The notes under the pieces: generated by a model
Database searches by the model: none
Told to the model about the DNA's origin: nothing
What the model saw: the letters and a program-made list of their open reading frames with translations, nothing else
Assembly: GCA_977030845.1 (NCBI GenBank)
Contig: OZ365112.1
Span: 18,724,001 to 18,788,000 of the forward strand
From: Fimbriosthenelais zetlandica
Taxonomy: Eukaryota
Length of the DNA: 64,000 nucleotides
Direction of reading: 5' to 3'
Part shown: piece after piece, positions 11,895 through 63,996 of the stretch
Layout: every line of letters begins with the position of its first letter
Position numbering within the stretch: position 1 is the first letter of the stretch
Position numbers and translations under genes: made by a program

Positions 11895-14800
11895 TCACAG
11901 AGCTTCTTGTTTGAGTAGACTCAGTGAGGTGGGTGGAGGAGGAGCAGGTGAGGAGGCTGGAGTGACTGTAGGAGCAGACAGCATCACCTCTTCCTTCATG
12001 CTCAGTGCCTCCACCTTTTGGCCAATGCTGGATTTGCGTACAAAAGGTTTGCCATGGAGTTTCCTCTGGTGTCGTGTCAGGTTGGTTTGGAAGGTAAAGG
12101 AAGCGCCACACAAGCCACAGATGTGGCGCTTACCAATGGCTATAGCCGGGAACTCGCCGGTCTTGATGCTCTCTACATTAGGTGGCATGGTACCTGGATC
12201 CACCTTCGGTGCTCCAGACAAGTCCAAACCCCGGGACCGATTCTCATCTTCTTTAAGCTTCTTTTTGCTTGGTTCGTTTCCCTCCCGACTTTCCTTCATA
12301 TCCAAGCTGTCCATGGTCTTCCTCTTCTTAATCAACTTGCTCCTCCACTCGTTCTCGCTACCATGTGAGTCCATCAGCTTCTGTTTGAGAGCCATCATAT
12401 TGGCTGAATTCATACCGAGAGGAGAGATATCAGTGATTCCCGCGTGGTACGTGTTCTGATCGGGCTGGTAATTCTCTGAGAGCATCAAAGGTCGTCTATC
12501 AAAGAACATGGCACTGTCTATGGGACTGGCACACCCGCTAGATGGCCTACTGCCTGGTCGGCTGCCCTCTGAGTCGCTCATACTCAGACTGACACCTTTA
12601 TTGGTGAGCATCTCCCTTAGTTTACTCGTGGTATCTGGTGGGAAGTCACGCCCCAGACGACTGAAGGGCAGGCGGCTGTACATATCCTTCTCTATGCTGT
12701 TCTCTTTGTCTTTGATTGGAGCGAAGGAGTAGGATTCACATGGAGGGGGAGGGACTGGTGTCTCATTCAACAGTTTACGAAGGTACGTCTGAGAGAGGTT
12801 TAAGATGGCACTGAAGGGGTTAGGATAATACTCTTTCCTATCATCTAGACTGGAGGAATACTTGTCTGATTTCTCCTCTGAGATCACATTACTGGTGGCT
12901 TTATTGTAGGTGTTAGTAGTTTGATGATCTTTGGTAGCTGTGAGATCTACTGCTGATCTCGACTCATGTGAAGGAGCCTTGGTCTCCACTTCCTGTAGCC
13001 GGCCATGTGAGAGGTTGAGGACTGCAGGCTGACCAACAGACGGAGAGGATGAACGCCTTTCAGCATTAAGTTTCTCCTCCTGGGTCCTCTTCTCCTGCTC
13101 CTGCTTGTATTCCTCCATGATGGCTTTTTTGGGCGGGAGTTTGACTGTATGGCTTGGTTCTCGGGTGATCACTGGATCTTTTCTCACCGGTGACTTGCGA
13201 CTGTCTTTCTCCTCTGCTGAGAGAACACGTTCTACGACATCCTGTAGGTGGTGAACACTACCACGAGCTGGCTCAATAGACGGTCCTCCCTCAGGGTAGT
13301 AGGTTGGGTGGTGAGAGGGAGGCAGACCTGCTCCTGAGAAAGATTTACCAGGCAAGATTGACGTGGTGGGGGAGGCACTCCTCTGAGATGTCAAGAGCGG
13401 TATGGCAGGATGGGTGACCGGGATGGCGGGGGAGTGCTGCGACACTCTTCCTTCATTTCCAACTTCTATAAGAAACAGATATTTATTAGTTTCTAACCAT
13501 CATACGATAGATATCATCCTTGTTATATGAGTAACGAAATAAATTCATTTTTTTAATTTCAAGTACAAAAATCTATGGACACCCACCTTGCTGCTGGGAC
13601 GGGGCCTCCTTCTTGGGATCAACCTTGTGAACGTGGCTCAGATGGCGGTACAGGTTACGCTTGGAGGCGAAATTCTGACTGCACAAACTACAGACCCACT
13701 CTGACGGCTTCCCACCGGATTTAACTGTACAAGAGAAAGATACAACAACATTTTAAATACCCAATCAGAACAAGTACTAACACTGAATATTGATAAGCTG
13801 ATGACTTAAATCAAATTAAGGTCTGGGGAATCAATCTAATAGAAATATTATTATGAGAATATTTCTTTAAAATAGAGAATATATGAAGGAAATTACCAAT
13901 ATCAGGACTGCTTGTGTCACTTCTTGAGCCCGAATCCTTGAGAGCAAGATGAGTAGTATGGATATGGCTTCTGAGAAGAGAAGCCATGGGGAAGATGTGC
14001 CCACAAATCTTACATGGGAACCTCCCCATGGCTTCCCCACTCAGGTTCAGTGGTCCACCATCTGACTCTGATAACATTTTCATTTCTGCCGTGGCCATGG
14101 CAACCATAGTACTCATGTCAGTTTCTGCAGGTCCAACAGCTGGCATGGTAATCTTGTGAACATAACTGGCATGCTTGGTCAGATTCTTGTAGCTCGAGTA
14201 TTTTTTGGTACAGAAAGAGCATTTATACGGCTTCCTGATGACACCAGAATCTTTGGAGGGTTTAAGATGGGGTGGGATGGAGTCAGCCACTCGTGGGAGG
14301 TTGGAATAGGCCTGCTCCAGGGAGGCTGGGAGGAAGGCTCCAGGGTGGTGTGACATCATGGCTGTCATACTGTGGAGGGCAGCAGGATGTGGTAGGAAAG
14401 GTGTGGCCAGGGCTGGGTCCAAACCACTGGTCAAACCAGGATTCATCATGTCAGCCATTGTGTAGTGAAACTTTGGTTTATAGCTTTTTGTTGCGTCTGG
14501 GGTGACTTCTTGCGGCTGTGGTTGCTGATGTTCTTGCTTGTGAACTTTGGGTTTACTGAGATCTATGGCACCTGAGGTGTCACTGTACACTGTGCTCCTG
14601 TCAATGCCGCGACACGTGGGCTCGTGCTTGGCCAGTTGTGTAGGAGAACCAAAAGAGGAGAGGCACAGACTGCAGGAGATTTCTTCTCTCGGAGTGATAA
14701 CAATATAGTCCTGGTCTTTACCGGGTTCAGAAAGATAAGGAGGGAGGATGTTCTTGTGAGGGGTAGTGTCTGAAGCTCCAAGGCCGGGTATGGACGGTGA

Positions 14801-16228
14801 ATAACGACCAATCTTGCCTTCAGACACCACAGATGGAGAAAATCGTCCATAATTGGACTCGGAAGTGATATTCATTTTAGATGGTAGTTTGTCTTCCACA
14901 GCATCTCTTTTATTATCCAGGAAGTGATCAGCATCCTCTGAGCTTACCGAGTGTTCACTTCTCCTGTCTGATTCATCTTTACCAAGACTGTCTCTAGTGC
15001 GGCGTCGACACGGGCGGCCATGGAAGGTCCGCTGATGCCGGGTCAGATTGGTACGAAATGTGAAGGACTTGTTACACGGGTTACAGAAATATAATTTTTG
15101 CGTACTGTTAGCAGGGGATTCCTGATCACTGGCAAGTGAGGGTGAGACAGCAGGGGAGGGAGCACGAAGGGACTGCATGGCTTTAGCTAACATAGGAGTA
15201 GCCATGGGAGAGTTACAGGCCTGACTACCTGGGGTAGTATCAGGGGTCCAGTAATCAGAACCATTAGGTACTGTAGGTGAAGGTGTAGAGTAATATTGAT
15301 CATCTGGAGCTACACCTGACCGAGCCAGATCTGCAGTGAAGATCTCCCTCTTGATGGATTCAGGTTTGGAGAGGATCTTCATACGGAAAGCATCCATTCG
15401 ATTCTCTTTATTACCACCATCGTCAAGACACTCAGTAACTGGCGCCAGCAGGTCTTTGCTCATTGCCCTTGCTCGTTGTTTGGCGTCACTTACAAACTGT
15501 CCAATGTCTTTAGAAGGAGAACCCAGAGTTTTGGGTAATTCCTCATCATACCAAAGCTTCATAGCTTGAGCAACGAATGAGTTAACAATGGTCTCAGGTG
15601 GTCCTCCTGGAGTTTTAGGCTTGGGCTCAGTTTCTAAAGAATTAAAATTCTGGTCGAGCTTTTCCCCATAGCTATGTAAGTCCATCTCCTCACTTATCTC
15701 ATGTTTCAACACCTTAGCGGGTTTTCGTCTTCGCCTCACTTTAGGTTCTGTGTTGGTTTTTGAGTCATCTGTTTCAGGTTTGAGACCAGAACCTTGTGAA
15801 GACACCTCAGAATCAGTATCTTGAGATGCTTCACTGCCTGCTGTCTCAGCCATCTTGTTCTTTTCTTCTGTTTCAGTTGTCTCCACTGAGACATGAGACT
15901 CTGTAGGATTATCAGAGCCAGAATGAGGCTTCACTGGACTCTCATCTTCAGCAATCACTAGACGGTCTGAATCACCTGTGGAGTCGAGATCAGTGGCTGA
16001 ATAGTCGCAAGCTACTGGTCCTGACTCTCTATCAGTAGAACTACCTACTGGAAGCTCAGCAGGTGTGTTCATAAGTCCACTATCCACTCTCACCTCAGGC
16101 TCCCCTACTTCCCTCATCTTCTCTGTTACAAAGTGATGACTTGACTCTTTTCCCACTTCCTCCACGCGATCCTCTGTGGCTTGTTTTTGCAGCGAAAGTT
16201 CCATTTTCTGTCCCTCAACGGTGTTCAT
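11895..16228 (-). CDS. Large (~1346 aa) transcription factor with six dispersed C2H2/C2HC zinc fingers; tentatively resembles PRDM2/RIZ finger types, no PR/SET domain found
   Basis: Exons 13897-16228, 13587-13724, 11895-13465 (4041 nt, in frame). Fingers: YFCNPCNKSFTFRTNLTRHQRTFH, ISCSLCLSSFGSPTQLAKHEPTC, YKCSFCTKKYSSYKNLTKHASYVH, FPCKICGHIFPMASLLRSHIHTTH, WVCSLCSQNFASKRNLYRHLSHVH, HICGLCGASFTFQTNLTRHQRKLH. Acidic/Ser-rich linkers and basic NLS-like stretches. Confidence 0.9.
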
Positions 16229-28593: not shown

Positions 28594-31500
28594 ATGAATC
28601 TCGACACAGCTGCATCATCCGTTGACGAACCTCCTGACTTAATCTGGCCATTCCAAGTGGATAGCTTGTGCAAACTATGTGTTAAATACATCGTTTCTGA
28701 ACTACATTATTTCTGCCATCTTGAGCCAAATGAGAATCGTTGGAGCCTTCGACCGGGTGTATACCTGCCTCCCCAAATCTCAGAGGATTTACTCCGAGAA
28801 TTTCAAAGACGTAAAATTGATTTGTCTGATGGCTTACTACATATTTTCTCTGATAAAGCAGCTGCGCCTTTGCGCAGGGTTAAAATCAATGCCTCGGAAG
28901 GAATGACAGATAAGGGCCTACGATACCTCCTGGCACATTACCTGATAGATCTGGACATCACATGGCATCATAAATTAACAGAGAAAAGTTACCTGATGAT
29001 TCAAGAATATGGCCGTAATCTCACACGTTTAGCCATCCGTAACGCTGCGCCTATGTTAAAATATGATCTTCTTAAATACTTGCCAGAAAACCCAGGCTTT
29101 AGACTCTTTGTGGAGACTGGAGATCTTAGCTCCATTGACCCTTTGGCTAAAGCTCTTGTCATGAAGAAAATACAGCAGACAGAAGAGGATGCCATTGCTA
29201 TCCATTTCACATGTCCAAAATTAAGATCTTTGACGATTCATTCACTCTGTTTGATCCGACATAGGACGCCAGATTACCTGGAGAGTGTATGTCGACCGTT
29301 ACATGGTCTGACATATATTGATCTCTCTCATTGTCCTGTTCTTGTGGACTCGCTTGTTTGGCTGAAGGGATTACCTCATCTTCTTGTCCTCATCCTCCAC
29401 TGTGTGCCAATTACCAGCTTGAAGGAAGCCTTTGACAACATAGGACACTTAAAGTCCCTCAGGTGGGTCATTAGAATTCACTAGGGGATTTTATGATCAT
29501 ATTGCTAACAATTATAATTGGATATGATCATATCTGAATGACTGTAAAACTTCTTATTGAATTGATGGATATCAAACAATTTTGTATTTAATTAATTTCC
29601 TTATCTAAGTAATGATTAATTAAAAACAGGTACGTCCTAATGATAATATATAATTGGAATATTTTATTTTATATACATGTATACTATGTGTCCTGATGAA
29701 TTATAGATCGTGGCAAAAATTTAAAAGCAATTTTCTCATCATTATGGAAATCTTCATTTCTCTGTCTTTACAGGACCCTCGATGTGAGTACCTCTCACCG
29801 CAACAGCCATATATTTGCTGATGGCGGCGTGGAGTTGGAAGTATTATTAGAAAAGTTGCCAAATCTGTGTGAACTCGACCTCTCAGGCACCAACATCGGT
29901 ATTCCTACTGATACAGTCCTCCGCGATGGCAGGTCTGTATTTTTTATTCACATTTATATCTATGAGGATCTATGAAAAGGTTGCTGGTGATTAATTCTAG
30001 TTATTTACCCATCTGTTTGTTTCAGAAATAAAAGTGGTATTCAGGGTCTCCATCGTGATGATTTAGAATTTCTCGGTCTACTTGGTTGTCCAGGCTTCGA
30101 TGATGGTACACACACCATTAAGGCAAAGCGGGTGAGGATCTTACCTCTGACTTTATTGCCTCTTGGTCCAATTTAAATAAAAATTTAAAGGCAATTAATT
30201 AATATATTTTAAGGGCTGCCCTACAGTTATATATATGACCTGATGCTGAGGGAAATGCTTGTATTTAGAATTGGTCGCTATGGATTGAGTTTTTATATGC
30301 CATGTTTTTGTGTTTGATCATGTAGGTAGCTGGGTCGTGGGGGGTGGAGGAGATGTTATGTGCAGGCCGCGTGTATGCTGAGAGGAAGGGTATGGTGACC
30401 ATGATTCTTCCTTCTCTTGTCATATCCCTGAGAAGCGTCGAGTACCAAGAAGAGCAATACCAACAGGCATTAACGGTAAGTTATTAACAAATACTAATCA
30501 CAGACCAGCATACAAGTTCAATATGTCATGAAAAATAACCATCAGTGGCTTGAAAATTATAAGTTAGATCTAAAAATGGGTAATTTGTTGAACTCGAAAA
30601 TGGAAGTCAATATATTTATTTCAGATTGTTCTAGACATCCTCCACCTGTACCTCAACTCCTACACCATAGCACATTACTCTGTGTAAGTATTCGTTAAAT
30701 TAAGCTTCTAAGAATACCTGGTATTTATTTTAGTGGAGTACGGTACCCTTAATATTTCCATTTCTTGGTCTTTCAGTCTCAGTCTGGCCTCTATCCTTGA
30801 TAAACATATGGGAAAGACTAAATGGATCAACACCAGGATGAAAAGGTAATTTCTTTAGATCAGAATTTATTGTTCTTAGATTAAGAAATCCTGTGGCACA
30901 TCTTAATCAGACCAGTTTACTTCACCATCACCCCCCGTCTATATTTTTTTCTTTCATCCTGTATTCTTTCATCCTTTAGGACTATAATTCTTTCCTTGCT
31001 GGACCTTATGGAGTGTCAGTGGCTCATGACTCACTTTAACAAGGCTGAACTCATGAGGAAGTGCTGTGCTACACTCTCTTACTTTGACTTGGCTAAGGAC
31101 CTTGTAAGTGGCCGATATTTTTTGAAATTCTTAAATGAATCCTGTCATATTATAACACAAATTTCATAAGTTACTACTACTGTACTGAAAAAATGACCAT
31201 TGGTTCTTGTAGAGATTTTGAACCTTTAAATAGCATTTTATGTGTCGTATGTTTTTACCCTGACCACTCTTGTCTTTCAGGTGTTCGCATATGAACGAGT
31301 AGTCACTATGCTGCTGTCACTGATCACTATAGATGGTGACTTAATGACCCATCAGGCCGTACAGACAGCCATCTACATCCTCCGTTATATGAGCTCACAG
31401 GTGGATGTACGTTACAAAGAAATGGCGGGTCAACTTGGCTGTATCAAAGTAGGCTTTATTTACAATATATTTATTGTTGATGTAAAACCTGTGTAAATTT

Positions 31501-46920: not shown

Positions 46921-49900
46921 TCAGAGATCTAAATAGAGCACTTGCGTAGCGGTTATGGCTCCGCAGAAGCTCAAGACGGAAGCGGAAATAACAACTGCTA
47001 CAGTGCTTCCGCTGTAGTGGATGATGCTGCCCATGAGAGAGGAGAGGAGGAACTGGGCCACAAAAACCATGGAGGAGAGGATAGCTACATCTGTCCCAAG
47101 GCCTCGTACCTGACTCTCCCCCAGGCTGGCTGCAGGAGGATGAGCGGGAGGCTGCTGCTGGTGGCTTCCTTCCGCCACCAATGGCTGGAACTGTTAATAT
47201 GTATAACCAAATATGTACATGTCTCTAACTTACATCTCTAATGTTACTGTTACAATATGGTTTTAATTTTGTAATCGTTGCATTAAGAGTGAAGTTAGCA
47301 GTCTCAAGGGAAATTGATCGGAGTTCTAAGGGCTGCTTAAACCGTAAGTCCCTAATAGTCTGTAGATCAGCACTTTACCCAGGAGACCATATAGTGGCCT
47401 ACAAGCCCACAAATATTAACTCATTATATTGTTATGCTGCCAACAAGCAGCGGCAATGATTCATTTAACTCTGGATAGGCACTGATGAATAGTCTCCCCA
47501 TGTACTCCCACCCCCTCTGCCAGGACAACTACATGCTTGTAACATTCCCTTTCTTTGCTGCACACTGAGCTGGAACATTGATCACCTCCTATGAGCGGGG
47601 CAGGTAATTAAGCATATAGGTAACAGATAGAAGACATGCATGTACATTTATTTACAGAATTCCTCAGCAATAATGTATTGATGTTCTTGTTCAACCAAGC
47701 TTCACGGGGAACGAAATGTCCTTTTACCCCAGCTGGCAATATAGGTGTCCAGATAATACAATCTATAGGCCTACATGTATTGAATCATGATTCAATCGTG
47801 ACTGCTCTTAAAGTCTGATTCGTAAAGTATTGGTGAGGCGGAAGTAAAAGTATCTGATAATATATAATCACAAGGTTAGAGATCCTAAAATCTTTTCTTC
47901 TGTCTCAACCTTTAATATGTGCCAGGCACAATAATTGGCATATTTTTGCCCCAGTTCCAGGACCAGGCGAGTTCTTTCTTCATTGTTTCAATGTTATATT
48001 CGTCAGAGTCATTTGGATGAATCCCCATTTCCCACATGGAGTTCCTATAGAACCAGCTACTACACTGCACTACATCCAGTTCATTGCTAAGACTGGCAGT
48101 GATCTTTTACAACTGCGGAATTCCCATGGTAGCTTGTATTAGGAGAGACAAATCATCACACCTCTCTGGTGCCATGCGTTCAATCAGCCATTCAAACATG
48201 AGCAGAGAGCCTCAGCTTAATGAGTGCCAGTTGTGAACCTTTGATCTGATACAGGCACCGCCTGCTCAAACAAAATGAAAGCTCGCACGGGAATCTCACA
48301 AGTGCTGAACAAGAATTGGAATTCAAGCTTAGAATTGTGGTTATGTTTTTACCTTTTCATCAGAATGTTCCTTTTATAATTATTCCAATTGCCTATCGTT
48401 GTTTAAACAATTTAGTGGGGGTAGCAATTGCCTTTGGATTCACTGTTGTTTTATACAGTGAAAACGATGTAGGTAATATTACATGTATGAGGGACAGCCT
48501 ACTGGGCCAAAGCTTGTCCAAAACCTTTTTCTATTCTGATGAAATCATAACATAGAACTCTGAGAGAAAGAATATGAGAAAGGACTGTAAACTTACCGTG
48601 TTGCTGGAGTGATAATGTGCTATCAGCACGTATGGTATTGTGAACAAGGTAGCATACATGATACCCGCGGTGGGTGACAGTAAGATAACGGTGACTGGAT
48701 GGCGCGTTAGAGCCAGCACCATGCTTCCTACAGTGTACACCAGCTGGCTCAGTATGTAAACCCTCTTGGCTCCTGAAACAGAAGCAGTAAAATATTACAA
48801 CCTGATCATCACCTTTCAAAGATGGTTCATTGTTACATAACTATCGGAAAAGAAATGGACTCAGGCTATACATGGGTTATAACACAATGCTCCCTTTGTT
48901 GTATGCAACTTAAAGCCTATACACGTTTCGAGTTATATTGCTTCATTAGATTTGTGAAGAGAGTAAGGATGGGACTTTATTTCATTAAAGGCTTCCCCTG
49001 CAGCTGGCATAAAGATGATTTAGAGACCTGCATTTTTTCCTTTCCGTGGATAATCAGAATCTGATTAGATCAAAAACTAGGGTGGAGCGATGATCACTGG
49101 AGTTTCTGTGGTGAGCATGGTTCCTCAACAGATGGGACTTAAATAGACTTCATTGCTTCTAATGCAATAGATACTTACTGAAGTAATGAAGTTATCTCAC
49201 ATTGGATATATGAATATGCCGGAGATCAGCAGGATATTGCAAAATATTATCTCTTATCTTGTCCAATTTAAGTGACTTCACCTTCCCTCTTCTGCAGTAT
49301 TTCTATCTGGAGGGATCTGCCGCCTATAGGTTCCTTCCCTTTGCCTCTAAGTCTTCACCCCATTAAACCAAGAATGAAAAGCTTGTTATTTATTAATGTA
49401 ATGCCCTGAACGGGGTATGAAAAACCTGATGCCCAGCGACACATTGAATTATTGATTAAGACATAATGCAATAGGGACAATAGACTTAATTGTTCCACTC
49501 TTGAGGATGGGTAATGAATACGAAAAACCCGTGGAAGCAAAAAGCTCAAATGCAACAGTCTGCTTTGCAATTATCCCCCTGGCCGTTGATTGGACTATTT
49601 TCAAAAGAATCACGTCACCACAATTAGGAACGAATTTGCCCTTGGGAATGGTGCCAATTCAGTTATTCCAACATTTCCAAAACATGAATCACAACATAAG
49701 ATCATGTCCTAACATGAATATTCTCATTAAGACTCAAAGGGCATTGGATATCACCCTTTAACACCTGGTCATCTGTAACAACTGTTTTGTCTCATTGTAA
49801 ATTTGGTTAATATTACTCACCGTATTTTTTAATTATCCTTTCAATTGAGAGTGAATATAAGGAGCAGGACAGTGAATAAAGCGACATCCCAAATGATCCC

Positions 49901-51435
49901 ATACGCACACCTTTCTGGTAAAGCTGATGTGCAGGACTTCCCTCTGGTGAAGAAGGGTCTCCACCATAAACTGCCTGACCAACAAAATCAGTGAAGTAAA
50001 GTGAATAGCACACCAGTGACATCCAGCAGAATAGGTTAGTGAGGCATAGAATGGCAATGCTCCGAGGCATTTTAATGATGGATTTGAGGTAGGTCTTCAA
50101 GGAAACTGGCTCTATGATGGGTTCATTGTCTGTTTTCTTGGGAGTCTGTGCTTCCATTGCCTCTGTGTCCCCCTTATTGGGAGGGACTTGGTTTTGGTAG
50201 GAAGGGGGAAAGTCATTGGCTAGTTCTGTGTCATAGGTGCTATCGTTTTTGATCGGTTGAGGTTTATGTTCAGCATCTTCAGGCCAGGTGTTGTTTTTTA
50301 CTCGGCCTTGACTCAGTGAGGTTTCCTCATTTGCTACCTTCCCCTTTGTTTCATCCTCACTGGTCTCGCTCTCTTCATTGGTGAATTTTTTATATTTTTT
50401 CCCACACTTCCGTTTCCGTTTCTTCTGTAGATCCTCTTCAGTGATACCAAGTTTATCAAGGGGCATTTCCTTGATAGAAGTGATGGTCAAAATAAGGCAG
50501 ATTATGTACATAAATAGAACTATGGAGAATACTACACGGACTTGGCTACCGAAGGATGCCCCGACTGATGTGCTCCCCCAGTCGATACCACCAAAGATAT
50601 AACCCAGGCAACCTCCAAGGCCAGCCAAGACTGTGAAGGTGCTCAGCCCGAGAGAATGGTCTTCCTTAATGGTGACATCTAACATGTATGCCCGACAGGG
50701 GGATTGGCAGGCATCACAGCTGAAGTCCAGCATAACCACGCCAATAACTGTGAAGAGGATGCTCCAAGTGTGCGGTATAATGTGACCATTAGCTACTTCA
50801 GGAGTTGTATCTGAAGTAGCCATATCAGTCACTGCTGAGGACACCATCATTTCTGGCATGATGGACTCCATGACATAGTCATCATGGCTCTTATTGTACT
50901 CACTCCTGAATTCACCACTGGATCCAGTAAACATCCCAATTACTGGTTCTGTTGTTGCTTCCAGTGCAGATTGGATGTGAACTTCATACACATCTCCTAT
51001 CAGTTTTCCGATGGATTTACCCTCGGGAACAAGTATTAGACCCAAAACAATGCCGCAAGACAGGATCATGATGAATGGTCTTCGTCGTCCAATGCGGGAG
51101 GGACACTTGTCACTGAGTGAACCTAAAATAGGCACCAGAAAGATGCCCAGAAGTGGACTTAGACACCAGACCAAAGTCATATACATGACCGGAACACCAA
51201 TCTGGAGCAGTATCGGGGTGACAAAAGCTGTTTCTGCTGCATAACAGAATTCTATACCGCAGACACATGCACTGATGAGGACGAGTTGGAGGCGAGTCTT
51301 TCTCTGAGTCAGGTGGGAGAAGTCATCGTCTTCTTTGAGGGCAAACTTCGACTGGACATGCGTCAGTATGGTCTCCTTGGGTAGTTCATCCTTCACATTA
51401 TTGAGGGCTCGAAACATTGACGCAACCAGCGTCAT
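46921..51435 (-). CDS. SLC45A: SLC45 family H+/sugar symporter (MATP/SLC45A-like), ~686 aa
   Basis: Exons 49821-51435, 48597-48772, 46921-47190 (2061 nt, in frame). Motifs GIEFCYAAETAFVTPILLQIG, SDKCPSRIGRRRPFI, LDFSCDACQSPCRAYMLD, NLFCWMSLVCYSLYFTDFVGQAVYGGDP, RGLGTDVAILSSMVFVAQ. Paralog not resolved. Confidence 0.95.
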
Positions 51436-59286: not shown

Positions 59287-62200
59287 ATGGACTTGATTTA
59301 CATCTCTCTCCTTTACTGCTTCTTACTCCTGCAACTTATAAAAGGTAAGATATTACATTTACAATATTTATAACTTTAAGTCTTAAATAAATAGTAACTG
59401 TAACAGACCAAAAAGTTATTATGTACACTATATATACATGTATTATTATGATATTTCCCTAGAAGTAATAGGATTTCCATTTTTGCAAGTATTACAGCCT
59501 TATTTGTATAATGATGGATCTATTAGTGGAGGTGGAATTCTATGAATTACTATGATTATTTAAAAAGATGCCTCTGGATATTTACATACCACAACTTTTG
59601 GGGAAAACGGTTTCTTATATGCTATGCAAAAGGAAATTTTACATACCTCCGAAGCAAGGAAAGCAAGGCTACTTAACCATTAATACCACTGACTCATTCA
59701 GTGACTTCCTAAGCCAGGCTCTTAAGCCTTTGGAAACACCTAAGCACACGAAACTCACTAATATCAAGTCACTAATAGACCCTGACGGTAATTATAATAA
59801 CATTAACAGGCCTTTCTTAACGACTGAGTGGACACTAGCTGTCAACATTGGATAAATGTGAAATAGGGGGAAAAAAAAGAAACTTCCCTTCCTTATAATT
59901 ACTTTTCATTCATTCATTCATTCATTCATTTATTGTACTCTCACTGCTTCTATTCTACAGCTCAATCTTGTCCTGGAACACAGACGTCCACGGGATGTTA
60001 CGTCGTTGGCATGAATCAGTTAGACTGGGATAGTGCTAAGGCAGCCTGTCAGAATACAGCCAGTAGCATGAACCGGCCTGGCTTTGGCCATCTTGCTTCA
60101 ATCACAGATGATGTTCAATATACGTCAATCAAAACTATGATCAATGATCTTATCAAAAAGCAAACCACCTTTGCGGCCATCGATGTCATTAGAAAAATGT
60201 GGATTGGCGGTAAAGAAGAGAAGGGAAATGTACCACTTCCTAATTGGAGATGGCTTGATGGTAAGCCTAATAAATGATCTTAACTTTTTCCTGTTTCGGT
60301 TTGATATAATCCAATTAGGCTACAATAATTTTTAGGGATTCTGACAATTTATAGGGGTTGGTAGTTTAAATTAAATGAATTTTATTCCCTTTAGATTCAC
60401 TGGAGCCTATGAATTACCAAGGCTGCTTTGTTCACAACCCTTCTCAACCCGATTTCGCATATGCCAAGCAGTTTACTGGCAAGTTTTCTCCAGAAATATG
60501 TATTTCCCATTGCTACACATTAGGATACAGTGTAGCAGCAACACGAGTGAGTATTTTACTTGTCATCTATTTTAATTCCTCTTCAATAAGGATTATATTC
60601 TGTTATTTAAAGAGAAATTCATCACTTTTTTCAGAAAGGTGATACTTGTAGCTGTGGGAATTCGTTCCAAGCTAAAGGCGGGACTTCTGACAAGTGCAAC
60701 ATCGACTGCCTTAACAACATCCACATTGGTTCATGTGGAGGTTTAAATAGCAATCAAGTTTATATGATAAATGGTAGGTTTCACTTCAAGTTATTCTTTA
60801 AAAGGATGTGAAACACTCAGTATAAACTTATTTTCCTTAGTAGTTCTGACCTAATGTTTTGTCGAAGCTGTTGAATTAGCCAATCCAAGATGTTTGATTA
60901 GTCAATAAGAATGAAGGGAATAGTTTCTGTCTTTTCCATTTAAGAAAACTGAACTCCTCGAAGAATTATAATGATATAATGATCGCCCAATACCCAATTT
61001 CCCTGGTATTTGTTATTGTAAACCACTTAGTCCTGTTCAAAATGTGTTAATGTTACATTCTTTTCATCTCTTAGGTTCTTTTAGTGACTGGAACTTTAAC
61101 CAGCCAAATAATTTTGATGGGTATCAGACCTGTGGCCATGTGGAACTCCAGCACTCAAAGTCAAATATATATGTTATGGGCGATAAGTTCTGCAGGGAAC
61201 TACATCGATATGCCTGCTCAGTTGGTAAGAATCTTTGTAAACTCTAGTTATTAGATGGACAACCAGTTTGAAAAATCTTATTAATTTCCTAGATATTTTA
61301 TCTATAATTAGGTCTAATTTCCCCCCAATAAATGAATGAATTAAGTTACGAATTAATTAATTAAAAATGGATTGACTTGATAATTTTCTCTTTTCTCTTC
61401 AGATCAGGTAAAGTGTGACAACAGGGAACCCTTCACCTACAAGGCTGGCGGTCGCTGTGTTTATTATGAGATTTATAACAGAGCTAACTGGTTTAACGCC
61501 CGGCAGAAATGTCGCTCTAAAGGAGGAGATCTGCTAGTAGCTTCATCCAATGAGATCATGGCAGATTTAACTTCTACACTTGTTCAGGTTTTACGGATGA
61601 ATGAACCTTTCTGGATTGGCATGTATAGCCGCAAAATGATGTGGGATGATGGTAAGAACCAAGATTGGCTCATCTTTGCTCTCAGCCCTGTACTCATTCC
61701 TAGCTGTTCATACCAAGTTTAAAGTCAGCATTAAACATCGACAATCTTACCGAATAAGTATCACTTTTCAGGCCGTTTAATTAAGTTAATTAAGTCAGAC
61801 ATAAATTTATTGAAATTTAACAATGATATAACGTGTATGTGGGTCCTGCTTGTATTACTTCTACATTGAATATTCTGTGAATTCTTGTCCAATCATGTAT
61901 GGATCCTCCACTGCGGAGTATTAATAGTTCTGTCTATTTGAAGCAATATTCAAATGGCAGGTGTTTGGCACTTCTCATACCGTCTTTTGTTATCTCTTAC
62001 CTATCTCCAGGCGAGGAATTCTTATTCAGCGACTTCCCTAGCTCACATCCAATAAATAAGGATTACAACTGTATAAGATTGGTCTCTAACCAGCAAGGTG
62101 TTTACTCATGGGAAGACTATGACTGCTCCAAAAAGCTCTCCCATTTATGCTTTATTGGTAAGTAACAAATTATTTAACATAATGTCAATGCATAGATCTG

Positions 62201-63996
62201 ATGAAAACGATAATAATAGTTACATGTAATATAAACCTACAGAAAGGATCAATGTATATAATGAGCATTTCCATTACCATTACACACTATATTACCATTA
62301 CAGATACAGTAACTCCTCTACCAACAACGACTAAACGACCAACTACCAAACAAATTACAATCGTTCCTGTTAGACCTACAACTGTAAAAGCCGCCATGAA
62401 TACAGGTGAGAATAACTAGTCTGAACGGTATAAATAATTTTAAATATTATTTCTGAATATTTTAGATAATTATATGACTGTTATAAGCGGTGACCAGGGA
62501 TGAATCATCTCAATTTAGTCCTCCTATTTATGTTTCAGAATCATCGGCCTTCACTACTTCTAATGGTAAATAATTTTGTAATTTCGTAGCTACGGAATGT
62601 TATGATATATTTACATAATTACCAGAAACTTCACTTCAAGGTATCAAATTATGATATTGAGGTGCAATTTTACATTGCAGTGACACAGAATGTGACCCTA
62701 TATCCCTACAATATCACGTTCTCCACGGTATCTCCGGTAAACACTACAGATCCTGGGAGTGGCGCGTCTATGAACGATGGTGACGGGAACAATACCCTTT
62801 ATATAGGTAATTAATCATAGGTCCTTCTTACTAGTGAAAAGTGCTTTTCAATAATGATACATATTTATATATCCCTAGATTCTTGAAGCCAGTATTAGTT
62901 ATATTGTTGTTTTCGGACATGGCATTTTATAATTTCGTAATATCCTTGGCGACAACTTGGTTTATCCGAGGTAAATATCTAACTTATAAACATTATTCTC
63001 TCGTTTTTTCCAGTCATTGGAGTAGTGGGTGGAGTGCTGCTACTTACCATCATTATTTCAGTTATCATTTACATAGTCACAAAGAGTAAATCTGAGTGAG
63101 TAATTTTCCTACATAGCATTTTATACCTTGATAATTGTTACTAAGCGATTGAGTTCATTTTTTATCCAGAACATGGCTCAGTGAGAATTAAACAGTACTT
63201 TCCATGCCCTCTCTTTAGGAGTTTCCAGTCAGGACATGTACATCCAGATAAGAGTAAAAATCATGCGCTGCCACCAGATTCAGATAGAACTAATACTTCC
63301 TCACCCAGACGAGGTGTAGACGAATCCTCCACAGTGACCACCAGCAGTAAGATCTACCTACCATCTCTACCTCAAATTATTCACCTTTTCATTTTGTTTG
63401 TTTTATGTACATGTATAATTATTGTTGTCCTGTTCCTGTATGTTTATTTTTTAATTTTAGGAATACAACCGACTGTCGAGCCCCTGCCTGAACTGCTAAG
63501 GACACCAAGACGAGACCATGAGTCACGATTCAGACTTGAACGTGAGTTGATCAGTTTTTTAAAGCTTGTAAGAATGAATAACAAATAATGAAGGTAGTAG
63601 GAATGATGTACATTGACAATACATTGAAAGTATAGGTATTGTATTTAATCAGATGATCTTTTATTTATATTTTAGCCCTCGAACTTCCTACAGTAAAAGA
63701 GAAGAAGAAAAAAGACAAGAAATCAAAGTAAGTATACCAATTATATCCCCGTCATAAATTCTTCATTCAATATTTTGATACCTCATAAACATTACTTTAT
63801 GCCAGGGATCTGATGTCACGGTTTATAGTGTTATGGGGATTTCAATTTCAGGAAGGATAGAGAAGGGAAACAGAATGGAAGCAATGGGACAGACAACAAG
63901 CGCAGGAAGAAGTCGAAGAAGACGCATCTGGACGATCCACCGGCTTCCTATGGTAACGCGGTGGTGGATATGAGCTTGGCAGAACATAATTATTAA
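59287..63996 (+). CDS. Type I membrane C-type lectin: signal peptide, CTLD1 with nested WSC domain, CTLD2, Thr-rich stalk, TM, basic cytoplasmic tail
   Basis: Exons 59287-59344, 59961-60260, 60395-60546, 60635-60773, 61075-61224, 61403-61651, 62011-62157, stalk exons from about 62305, TM exon from about 63014 (VIGVVGGVLLLTIIISVIIYIV), tail exons ending HNY-TAA at 63996. CTLD motifs WDSAKAAC, MWIGG, WFNARQKC, FWIGM, WEDYDC. Some stalk and tail boundaries are approximate. Confidence 0.88.
59905..59930 (+). repeat. (TTCA)n microsatellite
   Basis: About six TTCA units in the intron before the CTLD1 exon. Confidence 0.9.

Follow-up and report, generated by a model that had tools for sequence, protein, structure and literature searches.

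Fimbriosthenelais zetlandica carries a gene in which a complete WSC domain is nested inside a C-type lectin domain (CTLD). The 97 inserted residues are a full WSC domain with eight cysteines, and the two pieces of lectin domain that flank them are shown by computation to be complementary parts of one CTLD (CTLD1). The gene is located in the window analyzed here, a stretch of 64,000 nucleotides on contig OZ365112.1 (positions 18,724,001 to 18,788,000). As an overall explanation, to which we assign a probability of about 78%, we propose that it codes for a surface receptor in which the whole WSC (PAN/apple-like) domain would be a constitutive insertion in the first CTLD of a type I membrane protein, acquired as an exon module bounded by phase-1 introns on both sides. 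Both CTLD and WSC are ligand-binding modules of wide distribution, and descriptions of them have always been of beads on a string. Our literature searches brought up no account of a WSC that lies within a CTLD. The reports that we did find have WSC and CTLD as serial modules (polycystin-1, REJ) or list them as a combination in bivalve proteins, with nesting unmentioned.

A gene model built by hand comprises 15 exons on the plus strand, joined by GT-AG introns throughout, and gives a product of 644 amino acids without internal stop. Its domain order is a signal peptide, CTLD1 split by the 97-aa WSC that is encoded by two exons, CTLD2, a Thr/Pro stalk, one transmembrane helix, and a basic tail; judged from this translation, the gene product would be a type I membrane protein. 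For the four exons of the nested unit (exons 2 to 5), all coordinates and motifs of the preliminary description proved exact, with AG/GT borders on all four. The features of the gene are:

59287..59344 (+), exon 1: ATG and signal peptide, 19 codons plus 1 base, leaving in phase 1
59961..60260 (+), exon 2: N-terminal half of CTLD1, phase 1 at both ends; two extra N-terminal Cys, C1, WIGG, W-R-W-L-D
60395..60546 (+), exon 3: first half of WSC (Cys 1-3), entering in phase 1 and leaving in phase 0
60635..60773 (+), exon 4: second half of WSC (Cys 4-8, CGG), entering in phase 0 and leaving in phase 1
61075..61224 (+), exon 5: C-terminal half of CTLD1, phase 1 at both ends; QPN motif, C2, M-G-D, C3, C4
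61403..61651 (+), exon 6: N-terminal half of CTLD2, ending at W-D-D-G in phase 1
62011..62157 (+), exon 7: C-terminal half of CTLD2, no EPN/QPD motif
62304-62405, 62539-62565, 62681-62806 (+), exons 8-10: Thr/Pro-rich stalk with N-glycosylation sequons, as read from the translation
63014..63095 (+), exon 11: single transmembrane helix of ~23 hydrophobic residues, then basic residues
63219-63346, 63461-63541, 63676-63727, 63852-63995 (+), exons 12-15: cytoplasmic tail of ~134 aa

The ATG at 59287 is preceded by an in-frame TGA five codons upstream and opens a hydrophobic leader that ends in a GT donor. Exons 12 to 15 are likewise bordered by GT-AG introns; they encode Lys/Arg-rich stretches, and their frame is open up to the stop codon. 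In the second lectin domain, exon 6 matches Pfam Lectin_C (profile positions 2-54, 30.3 bits) as well as an independent CTLD HMM, which we built from six Lectin_C domains of the unrelated protein P0002 and which spans exons 6-7 (aa 294-396) with 46 bits. A (TTCA)n microsatellite occupies positions 59900-59930, ~30 bp 5′ of the exon 2 acceptor.

The inserted cassette (exons 3 and 4) measures 291 nt, or 97 codons, and contains eight Cys; both flanking introns are in phase 1 and the internal intron is in phase 0. Exon 3 matches Pfam WSC (PF01822) at profile positions 1-44 (24.9 bits, E 2.4e-5). Positions 47-82 of the profile are matched by exon 4, in order with exon 3 and on the same strand (13.8 bits, E 0.068). 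The cut-off of this family is 27.8 bits; the two exons were scanned singly, and their summed score would exceed it. When profiles derived from the gene family were searched against the PDB, that of exon 3 (A3) matched residues 92-132 of the KREMEN1 WSC domain (chain 5fww_B), while that of exon 4 (A4) matched residues 135-173 of KREMEN1 and also yeast Wsc1 (7pz2, E 2e-6). The cysteines of the window gene are spaced 25,4,16,2,14,4,9, compared with 25,4,16,2,17,4,8 in KREMEN1, where they form four disulfides (PMC5014086). In an alignment of eight genes, all eight WSC cysteines are invariant, as are the QGC and CGG motifs.

The known WSC structures also suggest how such a domain could be accommodated. 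The sheet of the KREMEN1 WSC has the strand order beta1-beta5-beta3-beta4-beta2, with beta1 beside beta5 (PMC5014086), and in Wsc1 a single aromatic cluster at the surface unites residues just before the first Cys with residues close to the C-terminus (PMC9024836). Both observations place the two ends of the domain next to each other, so that a WSC is able to hang from a loop. We therefore picture the inserted domain as one that would fold as a separate globule suspended from the CTLD1 loop. On its N-terminal side the insertion follows the W-x-W-x-D-G strand; on its C-terminal side comes a segment that reaches, 8 residues later, the QPN motif, which takes the place of the EPN/QPD motif in the usual sugar/Ca2+ site.

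The putative sugar/Ca2+ site of CTLD1 is atypical: it has QPN, a Gln in place of Glu two residues before C2, and M-G-D in place of W-N-D. CTLD1 accordingly lacks the canonical Ca2+ ligand set of true C-type lectins (EPN/QPD, the next Glu, W-N-D), although some paralogs keep N-D. A glycan would be a plausible ligand of the nested receptor. The dual-glycan receptor suggested by the preliminary description would be hypothetical: besides the atypical CTLD1 site, animal WSC domains of known function bind protein (KREMEN1-DKK1, PMC5014086). The protein may function in recognition or adhesion at the cell surface; its WSC would lie beside the remodeled CTLD site and create a second or composite ligand site.

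The same residues can be read differently. CTLD1 might serve as a scaffold only, with the WSC being a protein-binding module as in KREMEN1; the products would then be co-receptors for secreted proteins or self-clustering adhesion molecules rather than lectins. The partial replacement of the CTLD1 Ca2+ ligands and the missing EPN/QPD motif of CTLD2 fit this possibility, as does the behavior of WSC domains elsewhere: among animal WSC domains a complex has been solved for one only, whose partner is a protein, DKK1 (PMC5014086), and the aromatic clusters of yeast Wsc1 may mediate clustering (PMC9024836). Against it, QPN and the final Asp are kept throughout the family (in the exon-5 family alignment A2, the Q and P of QPN and the last Asp are invariant), which suggests that the site is still constrained. 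Moreover, some fungal WSC domains are reported to be glucan binders. On balance, we consider a purely protein-binding WSC possible but doubtful.

Five known systems resemble the proposed receptor in part. KREMEN1 and KREMEN2 are also type I membrane proteins with a WSC, and KREMEN1 is the best match of solved structure with near-identical Cys spacing, but in KREMEN, Kringle, WSC and CUB are arranged in series without a CTLD, and the WSC binds the protein DKK1. Membership of the KREMEN family was rejected, since the exons flanking the WSC in the window match CTLD profiles, not Kringle or CUB. Fungal Wsc1-type cell-wall sensors share the WSC fold family, the type I topology, a Ser/Thr-rich stalk and a single transmembrane helix with the window protein, whereas their WSC is a free N-terminal head without a surrounding lectin domain. 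Polycystin-1 and the sea-urchin REJ proteins are animal membrane proteins with WSC and CTLD in the ectodomain (PMC1934368, PMC9672506). In contrast to the single-pass window protein of 644 aa with its WSC inside a CTLD, they are giants with 11 transmembrane segments and with PKD, REJ and GPS parts, and their WSC and CTLD follow each other as separate modules. The window protein does not belong to this family either: its model ends after one transmembrane helix and a 134-aa tail and has no PKD, REJ, GPS or 11-TM part. The mannose receptor family, Endo180 and DEC-205 are type I proteins with tandem CTLDs, like the window protein, and provide the best profile matches of both CTLD1 halves; however, their CTLDs are uninterrupted and accompanied by Cys-rich and FnII domains, and no domain is nested in a CTLD. 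Finally, WSC is listed as a partner domain of bivalve CTLD proteins, in uncharacterized invertebrate proteins (PMC10140915). That paper gives domain combinations only and describes no nesting.

How could one domain have entered the other? The preliminary description had proposed exon shuffling, based on a cassette flanked by phase-1 introns at the W-x-D-G position, and both the premise and the proposal agree with our results. CTLD2 has a phase-1 intron at the W-x-D-G position equivalent to the insertion site, and CTLD genes are known to carry an intron at a site 3′ of the WIGL motif (PMC514892). Three free WSC modules of the same genome (L012, L014 and L015) are, like the nested WSC, interrupted in phase 0 after Y-x-x-[LV]-Q and bounded in phase 1 at the 3′ end; at their 5′ boundary, a phase-1 acceptor is present among several candidates. 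Exon shuffling is thus a good account of the nested WSC, judged from gene structure: a two-exon, phase 1-1 WSC module would have entered a CTLD intron of phase 1, at a time preceding the expansion of the family. It is the common insertion site and the intron phases, not phylogeny, that speak for one event before this expansion. A tree of nested and free WSC modules has no supported branches and speaks neither for nor against a single origin, and pairwise identities of the WSC and of the CTLD were not significantly correlated in a Mantel test (r 0.24, p 0.18). With donor-type module and acceptor-type intron, the latter still present in CTLD2, both visible in one genome, the family offers a clean worked example of exon shuffling.

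The window gene is one of a family. A search of its own genome identified the order CTLD N-terminal half, WSC first half, WSC second half, CTLD C-terminal half, and CTLD2 in 12 genes, each on one strand and within 1-4 kb. Eleven of them are located on the chromosome of the window between 15.2 and 21.1 Mb, the remaining one on another contig. The same four-part order, with larger introns, was found in another species on a 2-Mb contig (ENA ERZ25767047, locus L007). Together with the ordered Pfam matches and the invariant cysteines, this recurrence argues against a chance resemblance. Pairwise identity among the copies with the nested layout is 23-56%, and with all pairs at or below ~55% amino-acid identity synonymous sites are saturated. 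Despite this divergence, C1-C4 of the CTLD, the eight WSC cysteines, QGC and CGG are invariant in alignments of 7-8 genes, and the intron phases 1/0/1 are common to the window gene and L001-L007, those checked. The gene structure varies in a few copies. Paralog L003 has an extra intron within the CTLD N-terminal half. In L008 and L011, the second half of the WSC and the C-terminal half of the CTLD share one exon: the 3′ flanking intron is missing, and 2-3 linker residues join the two parts. These fused exons (L008:4399-4698 at 18.887 Mb and L011:3925-4227 at 18.912 Mb) lie 100-125 kb past the window and provide a splice-independent view of the WSC-to-CTLD junction. In L006 (~17.507 Mb on the same chromosome), a Pfam VWA domain is located directly upstream of the CTLD with its nested WSC (L006:3583-4281, two exons, 82.9 and 30.9 bits), so the nested unit occurs in more than one protein context. 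In L007, the first part of the exon for the CTLD C-terminal half is duplicated over 14 codons at 13898-13939, ~200 bp upstream of the real exon; this copy is probably a pseudo-exon remnant.

A library of 1.84 billion proteins contained no identical, close or spliced homologue of the window protein. Searched with exon 2, it returned three matches, and the sole relative among them (P0003) is an exon fragment of the other species. The best match of exon 2 in this library, P0001 (1816 aa), aligns over residues 35-73 only, in 14 repeated stretches; this repeat protein shows no convincing Pfam family. The fused exon of L008, used as query, retrieved nothing useful from the ESM Atlas, and a scan of JGI metagenomes with a three-sequence alignment yielded 164 pattern matches, none of which was confirmed.

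The tandem expansion of the family and the fast divergence of its members are compatible with a role in recognition. We tentatively suggest, as one possibility among others, that the family represents lineage-specific, tandemly expanded receptors in which the WSC grafted into the CTLD loop would form a composite site that neither domain forms alone. If so, invertebrates would possess a new class of receptors for pattern recognition or symbiont recognition, and nature would have employed a CTLD as display scaffold for another domain. More generally, a conserved family of 12 nested genes indicates that a CTLD tolerates the graft of a whole domain just ahead of its usual ligand site, which bears on the origin of new receptor specificities in invertebrate immunity and on CTLD scaffold engineering.

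We next consider the two halves of CTLD1, for which the preliminary description had predicted that profile searches would return one CTLD split around the WSC. This expectation held for one profile and failed for another. Pfam Lectin_C (PF00059) has no match on either half when exons 2 and 5 are scanned singly. In contrast, the independent CTLD HMM splits around the WSC in the full protein, into positions 3-67 (aa 39-110) and a weak match of positions 58-112 (aa 211-266), and aligns over positions 3-112 of its 114 (23.5 bits) only with the 97-residue WSC removed. By its profile, CTLD1 is therefore a whole domain only when the match is read across the WSC. In the PDB, the family profiles of exons 2 and 5 are complementary as well. 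That of exon 2 (A1) covers the N-terminal parts of solved CTLDs (REG3A 8-86 of 139, snake lectin 1jzn 14-82), and that of exon 5 (A2) covers their C-terminal parts (REG3A 96-136, 1jzn 89-132, langerin 89-128 of 136). The core residues are divided accordingly, with C1 and the W of WIGG in exon 2 and C2, C3 and C4 in exon 5, and none of them varies in the family alignments. In such genes, CTLD1 would be missed or mislabeled by annotation pipelines that rely on an unbroken Lectin_C match.

That removal of the WSC restores an end-to-end CTLD match could also mean that the cassette is facultative, and that alternative splicing produces either a WSC-bearing or a plain two-CTLD receptor, with this switch as the functional point. 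The flanking introns, both in phase 1, would keep the frame upon skipping of exons 3 and 4; as the preliminary description had calculated, the skipped form is in frame and its segment would be 3 residues shorter than in CTLD2, a result that we can confirm by arithmetic. Several observations nevertheless make such a switch unlikely. The cassette is surrounded by six splice sites that all appear strong, their pyrimidine tracts being good, and the eight WSC cysteines do not vary in the eight genes aligned. In addition, L008 and L011 lack the 3′ flanking intron, so no clean skipping of the cassette is possible in either of them.

The idea that both halves form one CTLD was further supported by fold prediction. 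When exons 2 and 5 were supplied as two separate chains, the predicted complex reached an ipSAE of 0.66, compared with 0.02 for the best of three controls; since such a pass may reflect remembered CTLD folds, it indicates likeness to one CTLD, not stability. Among solved complexes, 51 of 78 reach the mark applied to ipSAE; among mismatched pairs, 2 of 108 do. At least 80% of the contacts are shared between runs, at a partner pLDDT of ~60. The lowest-error contacts are Cys29-Cys47 (C1-C4), residues 13-15 with 45-48 (beta1/beta5), and Trp80 of WIGG with 43-46. The prediction hence brings the halves together in the canonical way, joined by the C1-C4 disulfide and with beta1 paired to beta5, and the earlier claim of a complete WSC inside a single CTLD is borne out by the split profile matches together with this predicted assembly.

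One might object that the CTLD-like pieces no longer assemble and that the N- and C-terminal pieces are separate degenerate segments flanking the WSC. The failure of Pfam Lectin_C on each piece alone could be read in this way, and the loop residues beside the insertion (exon 2 84-99, exon 5 1-18) have low confidence in the fold test and lie outside the confident contacts. We find this very hard to reconcile with the fold score and its C1-C4 and beta1/beta5 contacts, with the complementary PDB coverage of the two pieces, and with the invariance of C1 in the N-terminal and C2-C4 in the C-terminal piece in every gene aligned. Finally, the least credible reading of all is that of a pseudogene, or of WSC exons that persist as relics within an intron and are no longer used: although no identical or close protein is present in the library of 1.84 billion proteins, the frame is open across 15 exons, the intron phases are conserved, and cysteines and motifs are invariant in copies at 25-45% identity, the second species included.

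The window contains three further regions with open frames. On the minus strand, C2H2 zinc fingers are encoded at positions 11895-16228 by two long frames of 516 and 805 aa, in a region with a G+C content of 47% compared with ~38%. An intronless open frame of 540 aa at 49813-51435 (-) matches major-facilitator transporters (Pfam MFS_1, E 1e-15), and one of 296 aa at 28594-29484 (+) shows weak matches to leucine-rich repeats.
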